Shown: positions 24,956 through 62,093 of the stretch, in pieces | Layout of the letters: every line of letters starts with the position of its first letter | Position numbering within the stretch: position 1 is the first letter of the stretch | Source of the DNA: Bigelowiella natans CCMP2755 | Lineage: Eukaryota; Protista; Cercozoa | Direction: 5' to 3' | Assembly (NCBI GenBank): GCA_000320545.1 | Contig: ADNK01001009.1 | Location: forward strand, 59,738 to 123,737 | Length of the DNA: 64,000 nucleotides | The notes under the pieces: generated by a model | Databases searched by the model: none | What the model was told of the DNA's origin: nothing | What the model saw: only the letters and a program-made list of their open reading frames with translations | Translations under genes and position numbers: made by a program

Positions 24956-26638
24956 TCAAAACTCGGAAAGGGGGATGGTTCTGGTACAGGAGAGCTGGAA
25001 TGGAGGCTTTGCGTCACGATAGCTCTCCAGAAAATTCTTTAACTTCTCTGTGGATACTGTCTGCCCATCAGTAATGACGTTTATTATCTTATCGCCTCGC
25101 TGGAGGCCAGCCTCTTTGGCCAATCCATTGACTTCTTTTACTGAAGAGCTTCCGGTATTCATGACCATTCCAAATGGTTTGTTGTTCACTTGTATCGTGA
25201 AGGGAAATGTGACAGACAGAGATTCTTTTTCGTCACCTTCGTTATCGATTCGATGTCTCGCTCTTGCCATAGCCTCGATGACATCCATTCGCGAGAATCC
25301 ATATCTATTAAGGACTTGCAGAAGTTGCTTCCCATCGCACGGACCTAGTCCTAAGCTCTCGCATGTGTAAACACGAAGCAGCCCCGCCCCTGTATGGTCA
25401 CCATTCTGCTGAGTGAGCCCTAATTCTTCCAATTCATCTTTACTGATCATCACGTCAGACTCCCCTCTCGATAACCTCTTCGATGCTAAGGCCTTGATAA
25501 TGCTATCGGAGGACGCATGCTCCACCCCGACCTCAGATGCATTTGCACTGTTCTTCGCAAGATGAGTAGGGATAAAGCTATGGAAGCATGGCGCGAATTC
25601 ATCGTCGAGGCAATTCCGCGCGTGCCGACCTGCACGATCTGGATCTGTTAGAATCACGACGCCCTCTTGCTCTTTGGCTTCGATCCGAATTTTGAGAAGG
25701 GTTCCCTTTTTACGCGATGCCGCCTCCCCTCCCAATTCGACAACTCTAGCGTTCACTGCCTGCTGTACAGCAGCTTTGTCATTCTTTCCTTCCACGACGA
25801 TCAAGTAAGGAATTGTTGTTTTCTCCAATGTAGGGTTGCTGTTTCCTGTTGATGACGACAGAGAAGAGTCATTTGTAGAGATGACCCGAAATGACTTATT
25901 AGCCGCCGCCTCCATCTTCCTGCGCCTTTTTTTGTTCTCCACGTTCTTCTTATATTCGAGGTCTTCAATGCGAAATTCTTTCTTGAATGAGCCGTGGACT
26001 TTATTTACCGCATTAAGAAAGTTTTTATCTTGAGGAACTTTAGGCTTGTTGGACGATTCGAGGCAGTGCCTCCTAATACTTCTGCGAGGTGAAACATGCC
26101 GTGTAGAGATACCCGGAATGTTCCATATGTTTGTACGAATTTTGGTGCTGATACCGTGGTGCATCGTGGAGGCTGATGATCGAAGGAAACCATTATCTAA
26201 GGTGATGACAGAGGTTGGATTTTCCCCGTAGTGCGTGTTGAAGAGCAAGAGACCAAAGCACAGAGAAGACGTAGCTACTGCAAGCAAGGAGTGCTGATGA
26301 CGCAAATGAAAAAAACAGATTTCAATGCGGAAGTTTCGAATCAACAGAGATGCAAGGTGATAAAGTGCATTACGATGATATAGCAGAATTATTGCTAGTG
26401 CAATTTTGAGCTGACTTACAAATTGTTGCCGCTGACAGCAGTGGTCACGTAAATTTCCGTCTTCGAATCTCCTTCGCACCCTCATTCCAGTCCAACTAAT
26501 ACGACCAAAGTTAGCGCCACAGAATAATTTCCGAAACACAACGATGCAAATAAGTGCTGCTACATATTGATTCTTCTCTATCCACATTTTGAAATTGTGT
26601 GCTGTTGCGTACTGTGACAGTTGAATCTCTAGATGCAT
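24956..26638 (-). CDS. rnmV: Bacterial-type ribonuclease M5 (Toprim + C-terminal helical domain) with a long N-terminal targeting-like extension and a C-terminal PDZ-like domain
   Basis: Toprim motifs LIVVEGKND and VILTDPDRAG; RNase M5 motifs VGVEHAS and LGLGPCDGKQLLQVLNRYG; tail PFGMVM...AKEAGLQRGDKIINV. Uninterrupted 560-codon ORF; true start uncertain. Confidence 0.85.
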   Translation of the reverse strand: MHLEIQLSQYATAHNFKMWIEKNQYVAALICIVVFRKLFCGANFGRISWTGMRVRRRFEDGNLRDHCCQRQQFVSQLKIALAIILLYHRNALYHLASLLIRNFRIEICFFHLRHQHSLLAVATSSLCFGLLLFNTHYGENPTSVITLDNGFLRSSASTMHHGISTKIRTNIWNIPGISTRHVSPRRSIRRHCLESSNKPKVPQDKNFLNAVNKVHGSFKKEFRIEDLEYKKNVENKKRRRKMEAAANKSFRVISTNDSSLSSSTGNSNPTLEKTTIPYLIVVEGKNDKAAVQQAVNARVVELGGEAASRKKGTLLKIRIEAKEQEGVVILTDPDRAGRHARNCLDDEFAPCFHSFIPTHLAKNSANASEVGVEHASSDSIIKALASKRLSRGESDVMISKDELEELGLTQQNGDHTGAGLLRVYTCESLGLGPCDGKQLLQVLNRYGFSRMDVIEAMARARHRIDNEGDEKESLSVTFPFTIQVNNKPFGMVMNTGSSSVKEVNGLAKEAGLQRGDKIINVITDGQTVSTEKLKNFLESYRDAKPPFQLSCTRTIPLSEF

Positions 26639-27639: not shown

Positions 27640-29612
27640 ATGCAGTTTGTTTCAATCTTCGTCTCGGTGGTGGCGCATTATCAGTGGCAGGCCTTAAATA
27701 CTGATTCTGCATCATCAGCTGCAAGCACACCATCTCTCCGCGCACCCCCTCTTTCCATGTACAGAATCAAATTCGGGCCCCTTCCCTATGGGAGGACGCT
27801 CAACAACAGAAAGAGGTTGTTCGGGATAAGGGCTGCAAATTTTATGTTTCGGAATAGAGGACAACAGCAACGATCATGGCAGGCCTCGTTTGCAGGAAGT
27901 AAATTTTATCCGCATGGTAGCAGTGCATCGCCTACCACCCACCATCTAAGCGTAGGCCAGAGAATTAATCATCCACCTATATCGGCTCAATATTCCCGCC
28001 CTTTCTCCTTGCACGCTTTCGTTGAAGATGAGATGGACAAGGGACCAGGAGCTTTATCCGCCCGCAACATCACTGTTGCTGAAGCTGCCCACCAAAAACC
28101 TAAGGAGATAGAGATAATCGACGGCGACATCGGAAACGAACAGAAACCAGTCAAGCAGCAACGGCGACGGCAACAGCAGCAGCAGATGAAAAAGAGAAGA
28201 AGCAGAAGGAAAACAAGAAAAAAGCACGCAGATTCGTCGAAGAATTCCAAGCTTCTACCCAGTGCAGTTGAGCTACAGGGGATTGCTAGTATCGTCGCAC
28301 GTCTCCAAGTCCACGGACAATCTCTGGCTATGCTTGCTGCCGGGGGCAGTAGTAATGAGTCAAGACGGAGGGATGATACGTGTCTATGCCTGCACTACGA
28401 ACAGGGCGACCACTACAAGCTGAAGCTCTCTCTTTGCCACCAAGCTCTTCGCAGCAGCCCCTTTCCTTTCCTCAGGGAGGAGGAGGGTAGTTGCCATCAC
28501 AATGGCGGAAGAGATAGATGTAGCCTCGCAAATCGTAACAGGTACGAACAGGACGAGACCGGCTTGGGCGATGATGAGCACGATGGGGTAGAGTTGATCG
28601 GCCCGTTTGAGTCGTCGGCGGCAGAGTCGCTGCTCACCGTGCTGCGGTTTCTCATCTTCGAGACAACGCCCTGGGGGACGAGGAAGGAGATGGCCCAGAT
28701 GGCCCGCGATCTGCTCGGGGAGGAAAATGAAGGTAAGCACTCCTCCTCTGCTGCCACGAACAACCACGAACCCGCGCTGCAAGTAGGCTCCGCGGAACGA
28801 GACTTGCAGCTCCCGAATGATGACAACGACGATGATGACGACGACCACGACCACGACTGGCTGTTAAGTTTCGTGGGAGAGGCTGCTGCCCAGGAAGGAG
28901 GAGACCTCGAGACGCGTTTAATTGCCGTGTCTGAAGGCATGAGAATCGGCGATCTTCGGGCTGAGGGACTGCGTGCTTTGGGTATCCTAGCACGTACGAC
29001 GATGCCTCTGCCAAGACGAATAGAGGCGTTTGATATCTCACACATGCAGGGATTTGGAACGGTGGCGGCACGTAGTGTGCTGGTAGTAGCGAAGTAGTAA
29101 TAGTGGTAGTAATTGTATAGTAGTAGTAGTAGCAGTAGCAGCACAAGCAGAAAGCGAAGAGGGTATGGAGAAGAGAGTGGCAAATCAAATAGGCATCACA
29201 TATACTCAGTTCCTCCTTCTGTACGCTTTTACGAATTGTTACTCTTTTGTCCTCTCCCTCTGCCTCCTCCTTTTTTTCTGCATCATCATCCTCATCATCT
29301 TCTTCTCCTTCTTATCTTGCAAGGTGGGCGGAGAGCCGTGGACTGAATTCTACGATGCACATTCGATCCAGGTCGGTGTCAAGAGAAATTTGATGATAAA
29401 CATTCACCTATTCCTCCTCCTCAACTGAGACCTGCTGAAAATCTGCCTTTTGCTAGGACGCAACGATAGGCCCGGGGCATTCTGATGACTGTGCTGCTAT
29501 AGCAGAAGCCATTCACAAGCGGTTTAAACCGTATGCGTCCCATGCAACAACGAGTACGTGCACCTTACTTCAAGAAGCATCCCTCCCCTGTATGTGCACG
29601 CATTATACAACA

Positions 29613-29654
<42 letters not shown>

Positions 29655-30518
29655 AATGTGTTCCACACAGGCGACGATGCAGCAGCTACCTTCCCCCATC
29701 AAGTTAGCGACGATAATCCATTGCCGGATGTAGTGCTGATTGACGGAGGGAAGGGGCAACTAGCAGCAGCAGAAGGCGTTCTCAAGGAGCTTGGTCTCGA
29801 GACCCAGGTGAGTGTGAGTGATGGATTACGCTAGACATTGTACTGATGCTTCCTATATCCATAGTAATCTACGAGAAATCATAATGCTGTGTGCGAGTGC
29901 GTACTTATTAACTCCTCCACCCCAAACTCTCAACCCCATTTTGCCTCGCGGCAAGGTCTCTTTGCTAGCCCTTTCGAAAAGGGAAGAAACAGTGCATGTC
30001 GCGCCATCTACGGCGAGGAGGGGGAGGAGATGGCGAGAAGAAGGGACTGGCGACTGCGGAGGCATCCCAGACGAAAGCAGAGGAGACGAGGGGGGAGGAC
30101 AGGAGGAGGACATTGCAATATTAGAGGAGATGAACGACGAATCATCGCCCCTTATGCTCCTCCTTAGGCTTGCTAGAGATGAGGCACACGCGGCAGCACT
30201 GTTGACTCACAGAACGGTTGTAACACAGCTTTTTGACTGAGGCGGTGTTGTTACTTGTGATGGTGACGATGATGATGACGATGATGATGACGATGATGAT
30301 GACTTTCGTGATATAGATCTCTTTCCATTAGTGGTAGTAGTATTAGTATTAGTAGTAGTAGTAGTAATAGTAGTTGTAGTAGTAGTATTAGTGGAAGGAT
30401 GAACGATGATAATGGATCGGCAATGATCGATCGTGTTCCTCCTTTAGCTGCGCAATAGTGAGGCATTTCGGTCTCGTCTTGACGGGATTCCAGGTCAGAT
30501 CCCAACGGCCATAACCTC

Positions 30519-30554
<36 letters not shown>

Positions 30555-32273
30555 CATGCATGCATCCCCTTCCCTCTCTCCACCTTAAAGTATAGACCTC
30601 TCTTTTCTCCCCCCCTCTCTCTCCCTCCCTCTCCCTCTCTCTCTCTCTCCTTTTCCCCCCCCCCCCCCCCCCAACTTTCTAAATGTACCTTCACGTGTCT
30701 AATGCGTCATACTTTGTTTGAAGGCCTTGGCCAGCAGAAAAAAGTGGCGCTGTTGGCAGCGTTTGGAGGGAGCATACGCAAAATACAAAGCGCTGAGGTT
30801 GGAGATGATGATAATGATGATGATGATGAAGATGATGAAATAACGAGAAGCCGGTTGGCTAATCATCTATACACGTGTCTAATAGCCCGGCGTCGTTTTG
30901 GAAATTAGTTTCAGCAGCCCTAAGACTCCTCCTGCTACTCGAATTATTACTACAACAGATCCCGGTCCTTTCGTCTGTGCCCGGTATTTCAATCGAGCTT
31001 GCACAGCTAATCAAGAGCTACCTGTCTTCCTCCTCCTCCTCCTCCACCTCCTCCTCCTTCTCCTCCTTTCAAGGCACGTACCGGCATCCTTATCCAACTG
31101 CCGTGGCACCTCAGTTCGGACTGTACGATTCAGCAGCTAGTGCTCTGTCGTTGATGACGGGGAGGAGGGGGAGAGGTGGCGTGGCAGAGCCGTTTCAAGA
31201 GGGAAAACAGAATGCGGACAAAGAGGAGGAGGAGAGGGGCGGAGGGGGGGAGGAAGGAGCTCCGCTGGCCTCTGCGGCAATGCGGAGGGGCGGGCTCGAG
31301 GCGAGGCGATGGTGGAAGGAGAAGCGCACATTAGGAATCCATCATACTGGCAATAGCTATTACGATCTCCCTAGTGATGAAAGCAGTACCAGCAGCACTG
31401 CTATTGATGGGAAAGTGCAAGCTCGAAGTCAACGTGAGGAGGGTATTCGTGCGCTTTTGAGAGGCTTTCAGGGAACTGTTGAAAGGCTAAGAGGACGGCC
31501 CCCTCCCTCCTCCTCCTCCTCCGCATATAATCGCAGTAGCGTTGTCGGGCTGGGCAAGAATAGCAGTAAAAGCAGCAGATCACAGAATAGTGGACAACTA
31601 GGTGAGCATCATCAACTACGCCATCATGATGATGACGGTGATGTTGGAGAGGATGATAGAGGAAATGATGATGGCAATCAACAAAGTGATATTATTATTT
31701 CACCACAAGCCGTGTCCCCGGTTCCCGGGAAGGCCACGAATGGAATGGCAGACCTGCAACGCTATCACCGGCCAAATAACCACACTGCTCGTCATCGACC
31801 CCAGCTATTGAAAATGGCGCTGGAAGCCATTGACCGATCCTCTCTAAGGGCAACGAAGGCAGTAGCCGAAAAAACAGCAGCAGCAGCAGCAGCAGCAGCA
31901 ATAGCTGCAAGGACACCTTCCCTAGAAGCGGAGGCAAAGAAAAAAAGCCAGGAAAATCAGCGTAACGGAGAGGATAGGGAGCTGAGAGAGGAGAAGGGGG
32001 AGGGGGAGGAGGAGACGGGGGGGGAGAGTAGAGGAAAGAGAGAAAGGAATACAACTACAACAGCTGGTGATCTTGCAAGCTCTCCTCGCAGCCTCTTCCA
32101 ATTATACGCACCGTATAACGAGACTTCGGAGCAGCACCGCGTTGTTTCGTCTTTGTCGCGGCGTATCCTTGAGCAAGGGAGCCGGCACTCAGTTCTGAAG
32201 GGTGCCACGGGCACTGGAAAGACCTTCGTCATGGGGCGACTCATTCAGGAAGTTAACAGGTTCTTCTATGATA

Positions 32274-32305
<32 letters not shown>

Positions 32306-32415
32306 GATGATGGAAAGATCGATGATGATGATTAAGATGATGAGGATATTCCGTGTGCTTTTTTGGAACACACAGAGATCGAATTATATTTTAAAAACGC
32401 GCGCACAAAAACAAA

Positions 32416-32468
<53 letters not shown>

Positions 32469-34577
32469 GCGTGCATAGATGAGCTCTCCCAGAGCAAGAT
32501 AAATTAATAATACGTGCTGTAACAACCTGCCGGAGAGAAGAGCGCCTAGATGCTTTGTGATAGGAGAGATGACCCGCAGAGAACCATAACCGCTGCTGCT
32601 GCTGCTACTGCTTTGATATTCAGGCCAACGCTCGTATTAGCTCCAAACAAAGTCCTAGCCGCGCAGCTCTACGACGAGTTCAAACGATTCTTCCCGAACA
32701 ACGCCGTACGAGCCTAAATTAGAAGCTGCTCTCCCTTGCATTGATCTGTTGGCATCATTGTACGTACATCTCTGGGCTGCTCGGCCATCGTTTGTCTTTG
32801 CCCTGTTGATTCAGGAGTCGTGTGTCGTGATTGCTGGTGTGTGTTTCGCAGGTGGAGTACTTCGTCAGCTACTACGATTTCTACAGGCCGGAGTCCTACA
32901 AAGTATCACCACGACTAAGATTCTTCCCTCAGCACATGACATGATACCCCGAGCGACGGCTGCTGCCGCTGCTCACCGCGTTGATTCTTGCTGCTTTGTG
33001 TTAGGTTGTCGGGGACATTTTTCTCGACAAGATGTCCAACGTTAATGACGACATCGATCGTCTTCGTCATAGCGCCACACGTATGGAACTGCCCGCGGCT
33101 ACTAATAGAGAATAGATTCGGCTGCTGATAGTTTGTCTTGCCAACCCCTCATGTTTCTGGTTCATGCTCTTTCTGAGAGAGAGAGAGAGCGAGAGAGGAT
33201 ACCCAATTTGTTCCCTCCCCTCCTCCCCCAACACACTCATATATGATGCTTGTGTGCAGGAGCGCTGCTGGAGCGTCGTGATGTCGTAGTAGTCGCCTCC
33301 GTATCGTGTATATATGGCCTCGGAATGCCGAAGAGCTATGTGCAAATGGCCTTTCCCCTGGAGATTGGGCAGATATGGGCAGGGGGTGACGGGGATGAAG
33401 CAATGAATTCTCCGGGTGAGGAGGAGATAAGGATAGCAATGATGGGGAAGGGCACTAACGATGAGGGCAGAATCATTGGTGGAGAGGAGGAGGACATCTT
33501 CCCTGATGATGGCGACGGTCCTCAGCCAGCACACTATTTCGAAGCAGCAGCTCCTCCCCCTCTTCCCTCCCTTCTAGCGGCCCTGCAGTCTCTTGCGTAT
33601 AGAGAGGCCGATAGCCTGAGTAGCTTGGAAAGAGGGTCTTTCCTCTTTTCTCTCCCTCTTCTACTTCTTCTTCTTCTTCTTCTTCTTCTGCGTCGTGCCA
33701 TTTGTGGATATGGCCTCCTTACGATGCCGCACCAACCCTAGTGTGCTTAAGCAGAACAGGGGTATCATCGTCTTCCTCCCCCCCCTCCTCCTCCTCTCTG
33801 TCTTCTTCTGCTTTCTCTCCACCTTCCCGTAATGATGAAGCGGGGACGGAATCTCAGTCGTTGTCATCAGACACAGCAACAACACGCATTGAGGCAATTT
33901 ATAAGCTCAGCGAGGAGGGGTGGGTGGGCCTGGAGGGGTGGGAGGAAGGTGCTGAGGAGGAAATTGGCGGTCCCTTCGCACCTCCGCATTCAAGTGACGA
34001 GATCGGTAATAGTGATGAGGCTAGTGGTATCAATGGCCTTCGAGGGGTCCATTTTTACGATAATCTGACGACGACGAAGGTACCGCGGCTGCCTGCAACC
34101 GAGAAGGTCAATGATCCGTTTGTTTTATGAACGTGCGACTTGACGTGCGATGATGGGTCATCATCTTCGGACGTTGCTTGGCCTTTGTTGTCTCGGTCAA
34201 TCCGAAATCAATCCCACACCATCATGTATACGCAGGTGGAGAGCGTTATGGTATACCCCGCCTCTCACCACGTATTATCATCGAGGGACAAAGATAGAGT
34301 CGTAGAAGACATCAAGGTAATTCGCTCGTCCATCCATAACTAGCGACTGCACAGAAAACCGCTTAACGAGCACACACACGATGTGATATCGACAACGACG
34401 ATATTAACGAGGCACTCCCCATTTTTCGCTCTTTTCTTTCTCCGCCTCCTCTCTTTTCTTTCTTGTCGGGGGTTTTGACAGTCATTCCTCTCCCCCTCCT
34501 TCCTTCCTCCTCCTCTTGTTTTCGGGCCATAGGAGGAGCTCGATGCTCGCTTGCAGGAGCTCATTGCGGTATGCATG

Positions 34578-34618
<41 letters not shown>

Positions 34619-34906
34619 CTCCTCCTCTAACCGCCTCATTTCAATCATCCTCCTCTCTGAGTTCCTTTCTCCCTCCACCTTCATTCCAGGCGGGTCAAAC
34701 TCTGGAAGCACGACGACTGCGTGACCGCACGAGGAGGAACATCGAAGAGATTGAGGCCAAGGGGTTCTGCAAAGGTGGTGTGTTGTCTATTTTCATCTAC
34801 AGTACAATCGTGTAGCGAGTTAGAGAGGGAGAGTGAGAGAGATAGAGCGAGAGAGAAAATGACAGTGTGTGTGTGTGTGTGTATCTGTGTATATCTGTGT
34901 ATATCT

Positions 34907-34945
<39 letters not shown>

Positions 34946-35710
34946 TGTTAAGAGTGGATTAGTCAGGACATAGTGTTGCCAGTTTTCGGAGCACGTATGA
35001 TTATACTAGCTTGAAAGCCATGCTTGTGCGTGAGAGAGTGTATATGTGCGTTCGTTCGTTCGTTCTGTTGTGAGCGCGTCACTGACTTATCTAAGAAAAA
35101 CAATAATAATCCTGATTAAGATGCCGTTATGTGGTTGTGATGATGATGCGGTAACCCCCCCCCCCCCTTCCCCTACCCAGGGATTGAAAACTACTCCCGG
35201 CATTTATCTGGGAAATCCCCGGGGGAGCCTCCGGACACGCTGCTGGATTACTTTCCTCGTCGCAATCGAGACCCGAACGGGATCTCTCAGTCAAGAGAGC
35301 CAGAAACAAAGGCTACGAACGAGAAAGAAGACGATGAATGGCTGCTCGTCATTGATGAGTCGCATGTCACCGTACCGCAGGTGGTTGTAGCTACAAGCCC
35401 TTGGGTTTATTATTGTACGACCACGATGATGATGATGATAAATCTGACCAGAACAATTTCTAATCTCCTCCCTCCTCTTCTTTTTCTTCCTCTTTCTCTT
35501 TTTCTTTTTTTCCTCTTCTTCTTCTTCTTCTTCTTCTCGTCCCCCCTTCCCCTTCAATTGGACGCCTTTCCACGGTTTTACTGCTTCGTAGATTGGGGGG
35601 ATGTTCGAAGGGGATCGGCGCCGAAAGACAACACTAGTGCAGCACGGGTGGAAGCTTATCATCATCACTGCCTTACTCTGTTGATACTTAACAACTGCCT
35701 ACGTGCATGC

Positions 35711-35745
<35 letters not shown>

Positions 35746-36590
35746 TGGTGCCGCACATTCCCAATTCACGATATTACGCAAATCTCTCTCCTCGCCACGA
35801 CGTACAGTGTTCTTATGTGATGCTGCAGGTACAAGCTGGTGTAGTTTGGTTCCATCATCGTCGTTATCGGTGAAGTTATTGATGATTTTTGTTATGTAAA
35901 GGTTTCGGCTTCCCTCGGCCGTCGACAATCGTCCGCTCACGGGCGCTGAATTCTGGGCGCGTGTTCCACAGGTCTCTATGTGCTTTTTAGAAGACTTAGA
36001 ATGGCTTGTTTCAAGTGCCGTAGTCCGTTTCAACGTTGGGCACGCAACCGCTTGGGAAATTAGCCGCGCCTTAAATTGTACCGTTCGAATCATCTATTGT
36101 GCCCCGTGAATTCATGTTCTCCCTCTCCGCCCCTTCATCTCATCGCTAGGCTCTCTATGTATCTGCAACGCCTGGGGCTGAGGAGATTCGCCGCGCGGCA
36201 GCTGTAGGGCCTTCTGGGGGCGCAGCTGCCGCGACGGGGACACGCATCAATGGCAACGTTGATGGTGGGGATGATCACGACGACTGCTCGCAAGAACAGC
36301 AGAACCATGAAGAGCTTGTCCTTCGCCCAACTGGTATTCTTGACCCTAAAATCGAGATTCGCAAGCTGCACGAGCACGTCGACGATTTGCTCGAGGAGGT
36401 CTATCTACGCTCTTCGCTCTGTCTTTCTTAATTATTGCCTAGTTTGCGCCGATGTAGAACATCATCGCCGTTTATTGGCAGGTAATGGCGGCAAGAAAGC
36501 GGCAAGAGCGGGTGCTGATCACAGTCGTGACCAAGAGGCTTGCAGAAGGGCTTGCCACGTTCCTGCAGGAGAGGGAGGTGGGTAGCATGT

Positions 36591-36656
<66 letters not shown>

Positions 36657-36952
36657 AGTGTGTGTGTCCTCTCTAGTGTTTACATCGTCTCTTTTCTGCT
36701 GAAGTATAAAGACTTTTCATTGACATGGAGATGAACGTATGAACAAATACAAATATTTAAAGGCAAATTGAGGAACGGCACGATCGATGTAGTCGTGGGG
36801 GTCAATTTACTTCGTGAAGGTATCAATAGCTGTCAGTGCGTGCGTGCAAATATGATCCTTGCTCTGCACAAAGTAGTGTTAGTGAATTTCTCCATTCGTG
36901 GCCATCTTACTATCATCTTCAATCTTCACTCCCATCATACAACATACCAATG

Positions 36953-36985
<33 letters not shown>

Positions 36986-37329
36986 GTCAGGCCTTGATTT
37001 GCCCGAAGTTGCTCTTGTGATCATATGCGACGCAGACAAAGAGGGTAGCAGTATACCGATCGCACCGTATAATTCCGATTTTTCCTAAGCACGTCTAACT
37101 CTCTTCCTCCCCCCCCCCCCTCTCTCTTTATACACAACCCCCCCCCCCCCTTCCGGGGAAAATTGTAGGCTTTTTGCGGAGTGAAACAAGTCTAATCCAG
37201 ACGATAGGACGCGCAGCTAGGCATGTGGATGGGAGGGTTATCATGTACGCGGTACGACCACACTTCTTTCAAATAAGTAGTTGAACTCTTTTAGCCGTGT
37301 CAATAGGGTTTTCGGTGCCATAAAGAATC

Positions 37330-37368
<39 letters not shown>

Positions 37369-38497
37369 CTTTGTTGGGATAGTTCTACTAGCTTTTAGTC
37401 TCCTTCTTTCTCTCTCTACAAATTGCTCTTTGATTTTAGTTCTCACAAACCCCAGCAACAAGCATATTATGAGAGACATGAGAAAGAACTTATCCTTCCA
37501 TACTGAAGTTATAACTTAATGTTACCACTAATATTGATACTGTCCAGGACATTATCACGGGTTCAATGCGTCGGGCAATCTCGGAAACTTCTCGCCGCCG
37601 CCGACTCCAAATCTCGCACAATCGACGAAATAATATTTCTCCACGACCCCTTGAAAGGCCCCAGCACCGCAACGTGCTGCTTGATGTTATCGGCGGGTCG
37701 AAGGGGGATAAGGAGATAAAGAAAAAGAAGAAGGAAAAAAAAATGAGTGGCAAGAATGGTGGAGACATCATCAGGCGAGATGAGCCAAAAAGGGTTCAGG
37801 AGAACAGTGGTGATGCCGGTGGCAGGGATGCCCAGATAAAGACGACGAAGACAACGAGCGAGCGGAAAATGAAACTAGGATTCAAGAACAAGGAGGTGAT
37901 AACAGTAAAATAGGCTGACAAACTTATTATGCTTGCGGGTGTGATAGCAGAGATATCAGGGGTAGTAGTAATTGTCATAGTAATAGTATTCTCGTTTATC
38001 AATATATTTCGCCCGCTGATCCTTCCTACGCTATGTTGTGAACCAAAAACAACCTACTTAGGCAGCACTCGAGACAATTTCTCTTCTGGAGAGCTCAAAA
38101 CCTTTGAATAAACGCGCCCCGACAATTGCTCTACTGCTGCGTCGCGCCCGCTCGCACCCTCACCAAACCTCAGGCATGAGAGACTCAATAAAGGTGTAAG
38201 CGATATATATCATTTGGGTATAGTAAAATGAAGTTGGGGTTAGTTGAGGTGGAGTAAGAATGGAAGAGAACAATTTTAATCACAATGGTGTACGGCATGA
38301 CATAGCCGATACGTTGCGATAATTACTTCTCTGATCGAATGTAGGTCTTCGAGAATTGGTTGGAAAGACACAAAGCCAAAATGGCAGCAAAAAAAGAAAG
38401 AGAGAAAGAGGAAAGGAGGGAAGAGCGACTTAAGCGGCTGGCGAGGACTAAAGAAGAGAGAGAAAAGAACAAGTTGAAGAAAAAATTAGAAAGATGA
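27640..38497 (+). CDS. uvrC-uvrB: UvrC(C-terminal half)-UvrB fusion protein, intron-rich, with a signal/transit-like presequence
   Basis: UvrC: [37 protein letters not shown], HhH motifs GIPGLG and VPGIS. UvrB: [119 protein letters not shown]. Stop TGA 38495-38497. Confidence 0.9.
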
Positions 38498-45220: not shown

Positions 45221-45767
45221 GTGCCTCGAAAGACCCAGTGGCAACTGCCCACCCCGAAAGGCGATCATCGTTCTGATAATTTTTCCCGACTCGAAAGGCG
45301 ATTATCGTTTTGATGTTGCTGTGAGGGCTCTTACATTAGACACAGTTCAATTGACTGTTTGACCACCTCTAATTTGCTGCATCCTGTTCTTCCAGGCCGT
45401 TGTTTCTGGAAAATAAAACAGAGGGTAGTTTTCCGGGAAAAACTGCCCCCGCCACTACCGGAATGAATCCCGCGGGACTACATGTACTACACGCAATGAC
45501 TCATGCAGTCGGCTCGGTTGAAAGAGAGAAAGAAAAAATCAGGCAAATGTCATCCCGTGCTGCTAACATTGACACAAAATGCAGAGGAATTTTTGGTTTT
45601 TGTCGATCGAACCCGAACGGAAAATCCCAATGCCGTGGAACATGCTGGAACGTTTGCGGGTTGCTCCGCCCACATAACATATATTGTTCAAAATGCAAAG
45701 ATACTCAGTCCCGTACAACTCCATAGCAAGCGAGCAAGAGAACGAAGTGACAACCAATTCGACGAAA

Positions 45768-46418
45768 ATGGACGCGGAGGAACCCGTGAACATGGGCTTA
45801 TCACCATCTCCAACGCACGATTCAAACGAAACCCTGTTTTTTTTTAGTAAGAAGAAGAAGAAAAAGAAAAGGTCGAAGACCCGTACGAAAGAAGCAGCTC
45901 ATCTCTATAACGAAGATGGCCGACAATGCGAAGAGGTAGTGATACCATACATCAGTCTTTTGGAAAGATGTTTCAAACAGATGAAGCCGAATCTTAGTGT
46001 ACGGAAACCGTTGAAAATACCACCTCCGCAGATCTTTCGAGCTAATCGAAAGATTGTTTGGGACAACTTTCCAAAAGCTTGCTCCGCTCTTAGACGTGAA
46101 AAAAAGCATGTCCAGGCATTTGTGGTAAATGAACTCGGAGTGGAGAGAGAAGTCACAAACGACAGCCAGGGAAGGTTGGTCATCCGCGGCAGCTACAAAC
46201 CGAAGCAGTTCGAAAGTGTCCTTCGGAATTACATATCATCATATGTCACTTGCAAGGTGTGTAAAAGCCCTGAAACCACACTAACTCGCGACCCTATCAC
46301 ACGTCTACAATTCCTGGACTGTGTTTGTGGTGCCCGACGCTCAGTGAAGCCAATCCAGACGTTATACCGTGCTACAATGAGAGGGGAGCGTCGAAAGGAG
46401 AGAAATTCTGCAAAATAA
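45768..46418 (+). CDS. EIF2S2: Translation initiation factor eIF2-beta-like protein, intronless and divergent
   Basis: Poly-K box, YISLLERCF, LKIPPPQ, WDNF...LRREKKHV..FVVNELG, GRLVIRG, LRNYISSYVTCKVCKSPET, CGARRSV. ATG at 45768 taken as the likely start. Confidence 0.88.
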   Translation: MDAEEPVNMGLSPSPTHDSNETLFFFSKKKKKKKRSKTRTKEAAHLYNEDGRQCEEVVIPYISLLERCFKQMKPNLSVRKPLKIPPPQIFRANRKIVWDNFPKACSALRREKKHVQAFVVNELGVEREVTNDSQGRLVIRGSYKPKQFESVLRNYISSYVTCKVCKSPETTLTRDPITRLQFLDCVCGARRSVKPIQTLYRATMRGERRKERNSAK

Positions 46419-59405: not shown

Positions 59406-61760
59406 CTATGACTGAGAGGGGCCGAGCGACAACGAAAGGTATTTGCTCATCGGGACTTGTTTCTTTGATATACTCTTCCTCTTTGTCGTTGCTTTCTTCT
59501 TTCTGGCGTTACTGTTGCTATTGCCACGCTTTTTCAAGGATGAAGTACTTGCCGGCTTTCCCTTTTTTTTAGCAGGAGCTGTGACACCACCTCGGGTACC
59601 ATCTCTCCGCCGTTTCCATTGCTTCTTCTCTTTCTTATCTTCCTCTTCCTCGAAGCCGAAGTCGTCGTTTTCATCATCCTGATCATCGCCCTGGCCATCA
59701 TCCTCTGGCTCGTAGCTCGACTCGGACAAGACTTCGATCACTTCGGGTCGACTACGCTGCTTCTTCACATGGCCTCGTTCCTGTTTCGCCTTGACCGTCA
59801 CCTTCCTCTTCTTGCCTGTCGTCGCCTTAACGCTATTTTTCTCCGGAGATGGGAGCTCGAAGCTGGATTCGGAATCATCGCCATCGTTTCCAAGGTTGCT
59901 ATCATCAATGCCCCCGAGAAGTGCCGAATTATCCTCTTCGTCTCCAGCCTCTTCCACGTAGCTCACAGGCGCCCTTTTCCTCTGTGGCCTTCGCCGTCGT
60001 TGCTGTTTGTTACTTTCCCCGTCACCCTCGTTTCCCTCGGTGGGGGAGCAGCCACTCTCAGTTCCTGCACGTCCCCTCCCTCGCCGTTTTTCCCCTGATT
60101 TCCTTCCTGGGCTGCTGCTGCTACTTAATCCTGGTGCACTTACGGACTTAGATTGGAGTTCTGCGTCACTATCGTGCATGCCAACTCTATCGTCGTCTCC
60201 GCCGGCGATGCTATCGGCCGGGCGGGAGGCGCACAGAATCTCGTCTATTCGATCTGTCGTTGCTACATCGGCCTCGGCGATAATAGACTTGATATTACTA
60301 CGAATGGTATCCTCCATGTAGTCTTCCATCGCGTCAAGCTCAAACTTGTTGACGAATGACTGGAGGGCGTCGTTCATCTTCTTTGGCGCCACGATGTCCA
60401 TGGGCTTGGAGGACACGGTGAGGTGTTTCACGATGAGCTCATGGATAGGGGGGGCCTTCCCATCGTCCCGCTCGATAAGCATATCGTTTACGAGCGACTT
60501 CATGTTGTCTTTGGCCGTCTTCTTTGGCGCTGCTCTCTGCTTCTTGCTGAAGAGCAAGATGTCCTCTGGGTTAGCAACTTTCCCAACAAATTTCTGACCG
60601 AATCTTGCCGAGGAGAACTTCCGATATCCATTGTGATCCACACGGATACGAATCAGAGGTAGCATCTCTTGGGGTAAAGACTGTGAAGCCCTCCTATCCT
60701 CGTCTTCTTCCTCATCCTCCTCCGGTTCGAAGCCAAGCTCCTTCTTCACCGATTCGATGATCTCCTCAACCTTAGCCTGAAGGTACTCCTCAACGTCTTC
60801 CTCATCAAGATTTAGCTCTGAAAGAACGACGTCCTGCATTTTGAATGGACGCACGGTCTGCAGTTTCTTTTTGATCATCCTATACTGGTCCCCCTTTATC
60901 TCAAGAATCCCCACGTGTTTAGGCACCGTCTCGCCCTGGCTGAGAGAGGTTGCTATGGAGGATCCGGGCTGTGTAACAAAGTACCGCTTTTGAACGCTCT
61001 CGACGGGGTCGATCAAGCACTCATGCTCGTGCCCCCAAACGACAAAATCCAAGAAAGCTGGCAGCATCGACTCACTGATCGAGTTCTTGTAGAAAGCATT
61101 CCTCCGCAGCCTGTTCTGATGCAGGACGAATAGGTTGAAGTAGCTGTCCTTGTCCTCCAGGGGGCGCACCCACTGCACCTTCTTGGACTGGAAAGTTCGA
61201 TGAAGTCGTTCCTCTCTGACGGATCCGAGCCCGTATAGGGCCAGTTTTGTCGAGCCCTTGTGCATGAGGATGGGGAAGAGCTTGATGTCGTTGATATTGT
61301 GCGCTTTGCCAAAGTAGTTGACAAGGTTATGCTGCCCGAGCAGGTCGAGAGCGGAAAAGCTACCCATCCCCATAGGATCGTCGTGGTTGCCGTGGATTGA
61401 AAAGATGGGCAGGGAAATATTGTAGTTCGGGTTCTCGTAGTTGACACACGCTGTGTCAGGGAAGTTGATGGACTGATCGCTCACAATCTCAAAGTGCACG
61501 GGGTCGTCTCCTAGGCAGTGCTTCCGCAGTATCTCCCCTGCCTTGAAGAACGTCGATCTCGACGGCTTGTTCTCATGGAAGAGGTCCCCCCCCAGCAGGA
61601 CGAGGTCTACCTTCGCAGCTTTGGCAATGCGAAAGATCTCCTCGAACGTGCGGAAGGAGTCTTCTCCGCGGATGGGGTCCTTCTCAAGGTATCCTAGGTG
61701 GTTATCAGTCGAGACGAGGATTCGAATGACGTCTTTTGGAGGCGCTTTGTTGTCCGCCAT
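59406..61760 (-). CDS. MRE11: Double-strand break repair nuclease MRE11, intronless
   Basis: Phosphoesterase motifs TDNHLG, GGDLFH, IHGNHDDP, LHQNR, WGHEH, plus QPGSSIATSL, PLIRIRVD and RFGQKFVGKVANP. ATG at 61760 (MADNK). Confidence 0.97.
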   Translation of the reverse strand: MADNKAPPKDVIRILVSTDNHLGYLEKDPIRGEDSFRTFEEIFRIAKAAKVDLVLLGGDLFHENKPSRSTFFKAGEILRKHCLGDDPVHFEIVSDQSINFPDTACVNYENPNYNISLPIFSIHGNHDDPMGMGSFSALDLLGQHNLVNYFGKAHNINDIKLFPILMHKGSTKLALYGLGSVREERLHRTFQSKKVQWVRPLEDKDSYFNLFVLHQNRLRRNAFYKNSISESMLPAFLDFVVWGHEHECLIDPVESVQKRYFVTQPGSSIATSLSQGETVPKHVGILEIKGDQYRMIKKKLQTVRPFKMQDVVLSELNLDEEDVEEYLQAKVEEIIESVKKELGFEPEEDEEEDEDRRASQSLPQEMLPLIRIRVDHNGYRKFSSARFGQKFVGKVANPEDILLFSKKQRAAPKKTAKDNMKSLVNDMLIERDDGKAPPIHELIVKHLTVSSKPMDIVAPKKMNDALQSFVNKFELDAMEDYMEDTIRSNIKSIIAEADVATTDRIDEILCASRPADSIAGGDDDRVGMHDSDAELQSKSVSAPGLSSSSSPGRKSGEKRRGRGRAGTESGCSPTEGNEGDGESNKQQRRRRPQRKRAPVSYVEEAGDEEDNSALLGGIDDSNLGNDGDDSESSFELPSPEKNSVKATTGKKRKVTVKAKQERGHVKKQRSRPEVIEVLSESSYEPEDDGQGDDQDDENDDFGFEEEEDKKEKKQWKRRRDGTRGGVTAPAKKKGKPASTSSLKKRGNSNSNARKKKATTKRKSISKKQVPMSKYLSLSLGPSQS

Positions 61761-62093
61761 CGCTCGAACCGACTTCCGAGGGTGGGGGGGGAGGTGGGTT
61801 TTGGCGGGAAGGTCTTCTTCGATCTGCCTGTCGCACTGATTCACTTCGTTTGACTGTCATTCGAAGGGATTTGTTGCGTCGAATCTACGATGTTTTCTCG
61901 ATATTATATCTTCTAAAACGCAGTCGAGAAGGCCAGGTCGGACGCTTTCCATGTGTGAATGTTCAAAACTCCTAATTAGGATATAATCTATACCGAATAC
62001 TTCTTATCATATTTGAACAAAATACAGAAGGCTCACACTTTCGTGCAGAGTTGAGAACCAGAGAGGAGCATCGATCAGTGGAGTGGGAGGAAA

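Follow-up and report, generated by a model that had tools for sequence, protein, structure and literature searches.

A nuclear gene of Bigelowiella natans that joins half of UvrC to UvrB, and its possible place in algal organelle repair

How do parts of two bacterial excision repair proteins come to be encoded by a single gene in a eukaryotic nucleus, and what might such a protein do? The question is raised by a nuclear locus of Bigelowiella natans that lies in a window of 64,000 nucleotides (contig C2728, positions 59738 to 123737, in a draft assembly of 91.4 Mb and 3736 contigs). On the forward strand of the window, from 27640 to 37913, about 28 exons with GT-AG borders form a frame-consistent chain that runs to a stop at 37913. 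The predicted polypeptide has about 1750 amino acids. Its N-terminus resembles a bipartite leader; the UvrC part that follows is the C-terminal half only, and some 360 amino acids of disordered linker separate it from UvrB.

The gene and its domains

The place to begin is the junction. One open reading frame (ORF; 30875-32335, 486 amino acids) holds both the second helix-hairpin-helix (HhH) motif of UvrC, seen as a 16-residue peptide, and GATGTGKT, the Walker A motif of UvrB. The first of these aligns to the second HhH of UvrC from E. coli and Nostoc. The region around the other is the start of UvrB, corresponding to positions 2-55 of TIGR00631 and to residues 5-58 of the E. coli protein. Between them runs a low-complexity linker of 361 codons with no stops, where the remaining five frames have from 6 to 29. 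None of 20000 shuffles left the linker open, and the analytic probability that it is open by chance is 8e-8. A single exon carries the second HhH, the linker, and the first 55 residues of UvrB, all in one frame. An initial annotation had described the locus as a nuclear, intron-rich UvrC-UvrB fusion in which the HhH and Walker A motifs share one uninterrupted frame across a linker of about 350 amino acids. The description stands, and the fusion at this locus may be considered confirmed so far as DNA sequence can confirm it.

The exons on either side were modeled with a codon-aware spliced aligner of my own, guided by UvrB and UvrC of E. coli (L021, L026), a cyanobacterial UvrB (P0190), UvrC of Nostoc (L121), and a relative from metagenomes (P0005). 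Searches of families and databases were made exon by exon, and exon translations were concatenated for local alignments and trees only. As judged by the sums of exon lengths, the reading frame is kept with or without the two weakest small exons. A six-frame search of the genome with hidden Markov models (HMMs) placed positions 2-627 of the UvrB model TIGR00631 on successive exons from 32096 to 37769 and positions 445-481 of the UvrC model TIGR00194 at 29706-29816. Amongst the ORFs, Pfam identified PF08459 in 27640-29094 and 29592-29831, ResIII at the Walker A region, and PF12344 at 37548-37910. The start at 27640 is probably close to the true start, because the end of a divergent upstream neighbor on the opposite strand, at 26638, leaves little space for 5' exons. 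There are two candidates for the end of the gene, 37913 and 38497, the first belonging to the last well-supported exon. Contamination by bacterial DNA is ruled out by the many GT-AG exons, by eukaryotic neighbors (eIF-5 and Mre11), and by the existence of a JGI model from B. natans.

An alternative view is that there are two adjacent genes here, a UvrC half that ends in the supposed linker and a UvrB that starts at an internal methionine near 31814. This is what the JGI model would have us believe. The closest database protein, and the sole near-identical match, is P0001 (EukProt EP00466_Bigelowiella_natans_P013113, which is JGI Bigna1 53502), of 578 amino acids. It begins at residue 314 of the junction ORF, and the representative library has no longer protein from the locus. 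However, JGI 53502 was predicted from homology (Genewise) and then prolonged to the nearest methionine, and its 3' end is also wrong: compared with 31814-36830 of the window, it starts inside the linker, skips the region of UvrB domain 2, and is out of frame after FLQERE. An intergenic stretch would not remain open over 361 codons. Furthermore, the two halves of a paralogue stand in the same order, separated by long ORFs, and in the metagenome relatives the junction lies inside one ORF. Two genes at this locus are very improbable. Since the public model starts in the linker and is faulty at its 3' end, the database under-reports the UvrC-UvrB protein.

What has been kept of UvrC? The nuclease half aligns to residues 389-604 of the E. 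coli protein. Four of its residues, D399, D438, D466, and H538, are conserved in the alignment both in the window copy (copy 1) and in the paralogue (copy 2); these are the catalytic ones, numbered as in the mutational literature, and their positions were checked on the E. coli sequence. Exon translations of copy 1 match PF08459, the RNase H-like domain, as does copy 2 (E 7.8e-27), whose domain also matches the T. maritima UvrC structures 2NRR and 2NRT. Copy 1 has in common with cyanobacterial UvrC the motif GHSDD. The (HhH)2 domain aligns well to that of E. coli and Nostoc UvrC. Each HhH motif sits in a separate exon, and for this reason support from Pfam is weak: HHH reaches only E 0.05 with the second motif and is not found with the first.

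Then there is what has been lost. A GIY-YIG nuclease was found neither in the window gene nor in its paralogue, nor in the relatives from metagenomes, and the N-terminal ORFs have no match to it at E 1. At the same threshold, the N-terminal 450 amino acids show no remnant of a GIY-YIG, Cys-rich, or UVR domain. When this region was compared by hhalign with 108 bacterial UvrC proteins, the signal came from the region of FDISH, with low confidence upstream. Positions 1-350 of TIGR00194 had no match in the genome search, and the best matches to PF01541 (GIY-YIG) in the genome, on other contigs, are SLX1 and an unrelated small protein. On contig C2728 there was no HMM match to the UVR domain of UvrC, to the C-terminal UVR domain of UvrB (PF02151), to HRDC, or to SAP, the last exon yielding only PF12344. 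The earlier observation that no UVR domain lies at the C-terminus is thus borne out, both on the contig and in the candidate last exon at 38360-38497. A UVR-like reading of this K/E-rich ORF was considered and is not supported, there being no HMM match.

Alignment of the UvrB part with the E. coli protein extends from residue 5 to about residue 600, with about 46-50% identity. Exon translations of copy 1 contain the Q-motif, Walker A, DESH (Walker B), SATPG (motif III), and motifs V and VI of the SF2 core. The beta-hairpin responsible for verifying damage keeps its conserved aromatics, as judged by 16 residues set against their 16 counterparts in E. coli. In contrast, domain 2 (PF17757), by which UvrB binds UvrA and Mfd, has no match anywhere in the genome at E 1; there are only short remnants and long inserts. 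The probable exon or exons in this interval were also compared with the WPP motif of diatom-type proteins, and they too have no match to PF17757. The UvrA-binding domain is degenerate. UvrA itself was not found in exon-wise HMM searches of the draft assembly, where TIGR00630 gives generic ABC-ATPase matches only and PF17755 and PF17760 give none at E 0.1.

The HMM search for uvrA and mfd produced two Mfd-like genes, at C908:108550-111226 and C3659:19000-20750, in a genome where no UvrA was found. Both match the model from about position 310 onward only, and the UvrB-homology module may be missing.

The locus had been taken to encode a single-chain excision nuclease. That description is not supported: only the C-terminal half of UvrC is present, no GIY-YIG was found, UvrA is absent from the draft assembly, and the UvrA-binding domain has no HMM match. 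Judged by its domains, the protein is not a complete excinuclease. One might still suppose that the fusion is real and belongs to an ordinary excision repair with two incisions, in which separately encoded proteins, missed in the searches or not homologous to GIY-YIG and UvrA, make the 3' cut and do the loading. The damage-verification elements of UvrB are, after all, intact, the genome has its two Mfd-like genes, and an exon-wise search of a draft in thousands of contigs can overlook genes. But this view has to contend with the lack of any match to UvrA-specific domains, the state of the UvrA-binding domain, the identity of the best GIY-YIG matches, and the metagenome relatives, which are also without GIY-YIG and have instead gained the DNA-binding modules SAP and HRDC. 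I find it improbable.

There is one defect in the helicase. Copy 1 is short of about 17 residues in its second RecA-like domain (E. coli residues 470-486, approximately), which every other UvrB, including copy 2, keeps. The missing residues coincide with an intron (36582-36762) filled with (TA)n(TG)n. The gap may be a real deletion or a collapse of the assembly. Is the window copy, then, a decaying duplicate, leaving only the paralogue on C1246-C1244 functional? In favor of this, the missing residues form a strand and a helix in the core of UvrB domain 3, and there are very long low-complexity inserts. Yet some 28 exons are free of frameshifts and stops, all nuclease and ATPase motifs are intact, and the (HhH)2 of copy 1 is more canonical than that of copy 2. 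The JGI model bears the name estExt, a hint of overlap with an expressed sequence tag, and the gap adjoins a microsatellite-filled intron, where errors of assembly are common. Decay of the window copy is distinctly unlikely.

Relatives, descent, and destination

The fusion is not an accident of the window locus, since a paralogue and a family of metagenome proteins share its order. The paralogue is split over three contigs (C1246:16477-26768, C1245:370-450, and C1244:638-2289; L023, L018, L022, L019, L020). It has a UvrC half and then UvrB on one strand, with 55-80% amino acid identity to copy 1 in conserved exons. One exon holds the whole of its RNase H-like domain. The HhH is degenerate, and its two halves are separated by long ORFs of low complexity. 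The possibility that it is a haplotype copy is ruled out by different intron positions and the lack of nucleotide similarity. By these comparisons, the second locus is an old paralogue, not an allele.

The metagenome family came to light when the junction ORF was used as query against 1.84 billion representative proteins. In P0005, an ORF of 637 amino acids on contigs from Tara and other marine metagenomes, the UvrC nuclease domain is followed by a short linker and then by the N-terminus of UvrB. Past the ORF is a gap of about 105 nucleotides, taken as an intron, and then the rest of UvrB, which carries SAP as an insert and HRDC at its C-terminus. Twelve further clusters (the family P0005/P0031-P0042) are 51-89% identical to P0005, and most of them, not all, are listed with UvrC and UvrB N-terminal domains. 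The contigs are eukaryotic, as a formin (FH2) gene adjoins a gene of the family. Like the B. natans protein, these proteins have the C-terminal half of UvrC followed by UvrB, lack GIY-YIG, and are sister to it in both trees described below. They differ from it in their shorter linker, single intron, degenerate HhH, SAP insert (within UvrB domain 2), and HRDC.

Fusions in the opposite order also exist. In these proteins, 1100-1800 amino acids in length, UvrB comes first, followed by a UvrC with both GIY-YIG and the RNase H-like domain and without HhH. They were found with a long relative as query, by which UvrB proteins of bacterial length were left out. Their hosts are many diatoms (Seminavis, Cyclotella, Nitzschia, Pseudo-nitzschia, Thalassiosira, and others), Triparma, and the red alga Rhodosorus. 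Complete MMETSP transcripts account for some of these proteins, and the databases name diatom-type entries "Excinuclease ABC subunit B". They resemble the B. natans protein in being nuclear-encoded, in belonging to the same algal clade next to cyanobacteria, and in lacking UVR, and they differ from it in their reversed order, in keeping both nucleases, and in having no HhH. On this evidence, the diatom type looks like an independent fusion event, one that kept both nucleases.

Cyanidiococcus and Cladosiphon have a UvrB without a UvrC part. The former has a Pfam match to UVR; the latter has only a UVR-like C-terminal stretch, seen by eye and without a Pfam match. The N-terminal 200 or so amino acids of these two (P0012 and P0024, respectively) and of P0006 and P0017 share AVLVxxxK...LLLT...A, without a Pfam match, and to the eye this stretch of red and brown algal UvrB may recall a restriction-endonuclease-like fold. 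P0029, a stramenopile-like metagenome protein of 765 amino acids, has several "helicase-associated" repeats (WxxMFxxLxxY...GHCNVP) joined to the N-terminus of UvrB; if so, algal UvrB would have received N-terminal additions of three kinds.

From where did the two halves come? A UvrB tree was built from 49 rows and 666 columns under LG+C20+F+G4 (supports are given as ultrafast bootstrap / SH-aLRT). The two B. natans copies are sisters (99/84), joined first by the metagenome relative (98/89) and then by Cladosiphon (96/94). All algal sequences are separated from all prokaryotes (100/98), and the algae together with cyanobacteria and one unnamed bacterium are separated from all other bacteria (100/99). 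The tree of the UvrC half, which is shorter, unites B. natans with the metagenome clade (SH-aLRT 90) and splits both types of fusion plus cyanobacteria from other bacteria (SH-aLRT 97). Both halves therefore look plastid-derived, of cyanobacterial descent, as far as trees can tell. The donor to B. natans could be the green endosymbiont or another alga. The cyanobacterial grouping of both halves fits a role in an organelle.

The leader points in the same direction. Residues 1-12 are hydrophobic (mean Kyte-Doolittle 2.1), and residues 21-125 contain 14 K+R, one D+E, and 21 S+T, in agreement with the initial annotation, which had the N-terminus hydrophobic and then S/R-rich and acid-poor. Proteins bound for the plastid and periplastid space of B. 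natans require a signal peptide and then a leader like a transit peptide (PMC3542566). The composition seen here fits such a bipartite leader, a fit that is suggestive only. The start of copy 2 is more clearly like a signal peptide, with a basic n-region and then a hydrophobic core of 18 residues. Amongst diatom-like proteins, UvrB N-terminal fragments, which may or may not come from fusions, show plastid-type signals, AAASAFSP and ITAFSP; sequences like ASAFSP resemble the heterokont plastid signal. The UvrC-UvrB protein goes unmentioned in the main text of the paper on plastid proteomics in B. natans.

Might the protein go elsewhere, to the mitochondrion or the host nucleus, or serve some purpose apart from lesions, such as dealing with R-loops or stalled replication? 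Only about 12 residues make up the hydrophobic start, and the Arg-rich stretch behind it could also serve as a mitochondrial presequence, and the assignment to the plastid complex is a prediction from sequence. Against this stand the cyanobacterial ancestry of both halves, the clearer signal peptide of copy 2, and the plastid-type signals of the diatom-type relatives. A different site or role seems to me unlikely.

How the protein might work

I propose, with modest inclination and no great assurance, that this is a nuclear gene of cyanobacterial and plastid descent whose product, the C-terminal half of UvrC linked to UvrB, is imported into the plastid complex and works there without UvrA. Import would be to the stroma or to the periplastid (nucleomorph) compartment. 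The HhH domain and the basic tail would keep the protein on DNA. UvrB would thread one strand behind its beta-hairpin and stall at a bulky lesion, whereupon the tethered nuclease would nick 5' of the lesion. A single damage-dependent nick is the likeliest chemistry, since the 5' nuclease alone is present. Repair might be completed by strand-displacement synthesis and removal of the flap, or else by an unidentified or foreign 3' nuclease.

There is an analogy in UVDE-type alternative excision repair, where a single nick 5' of the lesion is followed by processing of the flap. The analogy is functional only and goes no further than the sufficiency of a single 5' nick, for the protein family is unrelated. 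In bacteria, UvrC is recruited through contact between UVR domains, and here the covalent link would stand in for that contact. The lack of UvrA, the degenerate UvrA-binding domain, the lack of UVR, and the covalent link itself together suggest that the tether replaces recruitment and that HhH supplies DNA binding. For the relatives from metagenomes, further binding would come from SAP and HRDC. UvrBC of E. coli is able to locate damage from ultraviolet (UV) light without UvrA (PMC5814901).

The comparison with bacterial UvrABC brings out how much is shared and how much is not. Both have the beta-hairpin and helicase motifs of UvrB, and both have the RNase H-like nuclease of UvrC with its four catalytic residues and, as far as alignment shows, (HhH)2. 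Unlike the bacterial proteins, the B. natans version is one eukaryotic nuclear polypeptide from about 28 exons, with a targeting-like leader and long disordered inserts. It is without GIY-YIG and without UVR in either half, its UvrA-binding domain is degenerate, and no UvrA has been found to accompany it. The nuclease activities of UvrC can be separated between proteins, as demonstrated by Cho, a UvrC homologue that makes the 3' cut only (PMC1564403). Cho keeps the GIY-YIG half, while the B. natans protein keeps the opposite half.

Several considerations weigh against the proposal of an imported, UvrA-independent nicking protein. The E. coli enzyme normally cuts on the 5' side after its GIY-YIG domain has cut on the 3' side, and the B. 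natans protein lacks GIY-YIG. The absence of UvrA comes from exon-wise HMM searches of a draft assembly, in which genes can be missed. The gap of about 17 residues may mean that the helicase of copy 1 is impaired, or that the assembly is faulty there. The argument for targeting is one of sequence composition. Finally, the sole public model covers the UvrB part alone, and the fusion is read from DNA.

It is possible to go further and suppose that a reduced excision repair of cyanobacterial origin persists in the organelles of some algae and can dispense with both UvrA and GIY-YIG, the two old B. natans paralogues serving two genomes derived from endosymbionts (for example, those of the plastid and of the nucleomorph or mitochondrion). 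I offer this extension tentatively, as a possibility I would not count on.

The locus, its neighbors, and the wider meaning

The coordinates of the exons and of notable features within them are collected in Table 1.

Table 1. Predicted exons and features of the UvrC-UvrB gene, in positions of the window
Feature	Position	Strand	Basis and remarks
Exon 1: start codon, leader (amino acids 1-125), low-complexity N-region, start of RNase H-like domain (RIEAFDISH)	27640-29082	+	PF08459 at amino acids 457-480
Asp equivalent to E. coli D399, in exon 1	29032-29034	+	Alignment of catalytic residue
Candidate small exon of nuclease domain (16-residue peptide)	29324-29371	+	Weak; Nostoc UvrC guide only; length a multiple of 3
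Exon (17-residue peptide) with Asp equivalent to D438	29457-29536	+	Alignments; GHSDD also in cyanobacterial UvrC
Exon (13-residue peptide) with D466 equivalent	29708-29807	+	PF08459, E 3.5e-9; TIGR00194 positions 445-481
Exon (14-residue peptide), conserved UvrC LAKREE strand	29956-29997	+	Spliced alignment guided by P0005
Exon (17-residue peptide) with H538 equivalent	30106-30216	+	Alignments
Short exon (15-residue peptide), interval between nuclease domain and HhH	30448-30493	+	Spliced alignments
First-HhH exon (25-residue peptide)	30724-30797	+	Aligned to E. coli UvrC 563-586 and Nostoc; no Pfam match alone
Junction exon, 1301 nucleotides: second HhH 30959-31021, linker 31013-32095, UvrB N-terminus with Q-motif and Walker A (GATGTGKT) 32096-32259	30959-32259	+	Acceptor ...acag/ATC, donor CAG/gttctt
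UvrB exon, motif Ia (15-residue peptide)	32624-32705	+	79% identity to E. coli 58-86
UvrB exon, beta-hairpin (16-residue peptide)	32852-32902	+	Alignments
UvrB exon, E. coli 103-127	33005-33080	+	Alignments
UvrB exon, E. coli 128 to about 190, low-complexity insert	33260-33587	+	JGI model shares donor region
Probable exon(s), UvrB domain 2 remnants (two 14-residue peptides) and long inserts	33635-34046	+	Uncertain borders; L035-guided alignment; skipped by JGI model
UvrB exon (10-residue peptide)	34236-34316	+	Alignments
UvrB exon	34533-34568	+	Alignments
UvrB exon	34690-34774	+	Alignments
UvrB exon (25-residue peptide)	35181-35258	+	HMM and alignments
UvrB exon, Walker B / motif II (13-residue peptide)	35331-35380	+	Alignments
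UvrB exon	35592-35647	+	Alignments
UvrB exon (12-residue peptide)	35902-35971	+	Alignments
UvrB exon, motif III (YVSATPG)	36150-36203	+	Alignments
UvrB exon (LRPTGILDP)	36300-36398	+	HMM and alignments
UvrB exon (25-residue peptide)	36482-36581	+	Donor G/gtagca inferred by hand
UvrB exon, start of motif V (11-residue peptide)	36763-36819	+	Alignments
UvrB exon (18-residue peptide)	36991-37044	+	Alignments
UvrB exon, motif VI (QTIGRAARH)	37169-37251	+	HMM and alignments
Last well-supported exon: PF12344, then Lys-rich tail and stop	37548-37913	+	PF12344, E 1.7e-13
Possible alternative terminal exon, K/E-rich	38360-38497	+	Gene end of the initial annotation; unconfirmed candidate

Upstream, on the reverse strand, is the divergent ORF of 560 amino acids (24959-26638), whose Toprim and DUF4093 domains are the pair characteristic of bacterial ribonuclease M5, the maturase of 5S rRNA. 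It is another gene of bacterial type, about 1 kb from the start of UvrC-UvrB, and the two may share a promoter region. The window also holds ordinary eukaryotic neighbors: a protein with an eIF-5/eIF-2B domain (45684-46415, forward strand) and Mre11, with Metallophos and Mre11_DNA_bind (59409-61844, reverse strand).

According to a review, flowering plants lack UvrA, UvrB, and UvrC, and excision repair seems to be lacking in organelles (PMC6981420). A census in 2006 listed no eukaryotic UvrC (PMC1564403), and the plant "uvrB/C" gene of the literature is a protein with a UVR motif only (PMC4824065). Full-text searches, some of them poorly targeted, found no description of either order of fusion.

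There appears to be, in algae, a set of nuclear genes derived from cyanobacteria in which UvrB and UvrC have been fused in two orders. One of the two orders, to judge from its domains, has lost dependence on UvrA, both UVR domains, and one of the two nucleases. In the organelles of some algae, a reduced form of bacterial-type excision repair probably still operates, with no UvrA. These genes offer a natural experiment on what a minimal UvrB-UvrC machine can do when UvrA is absent, which single-molecule studies of the E. coli proteins had made a question (PMC5814901), and the protein is a candidate for the dark repair of UV damage to plastid DNA in ecologically dominant phytoplankton. If true, a stripped-down organellar machine would overturn the common statement that organelles are without repair of the UvrABC type.

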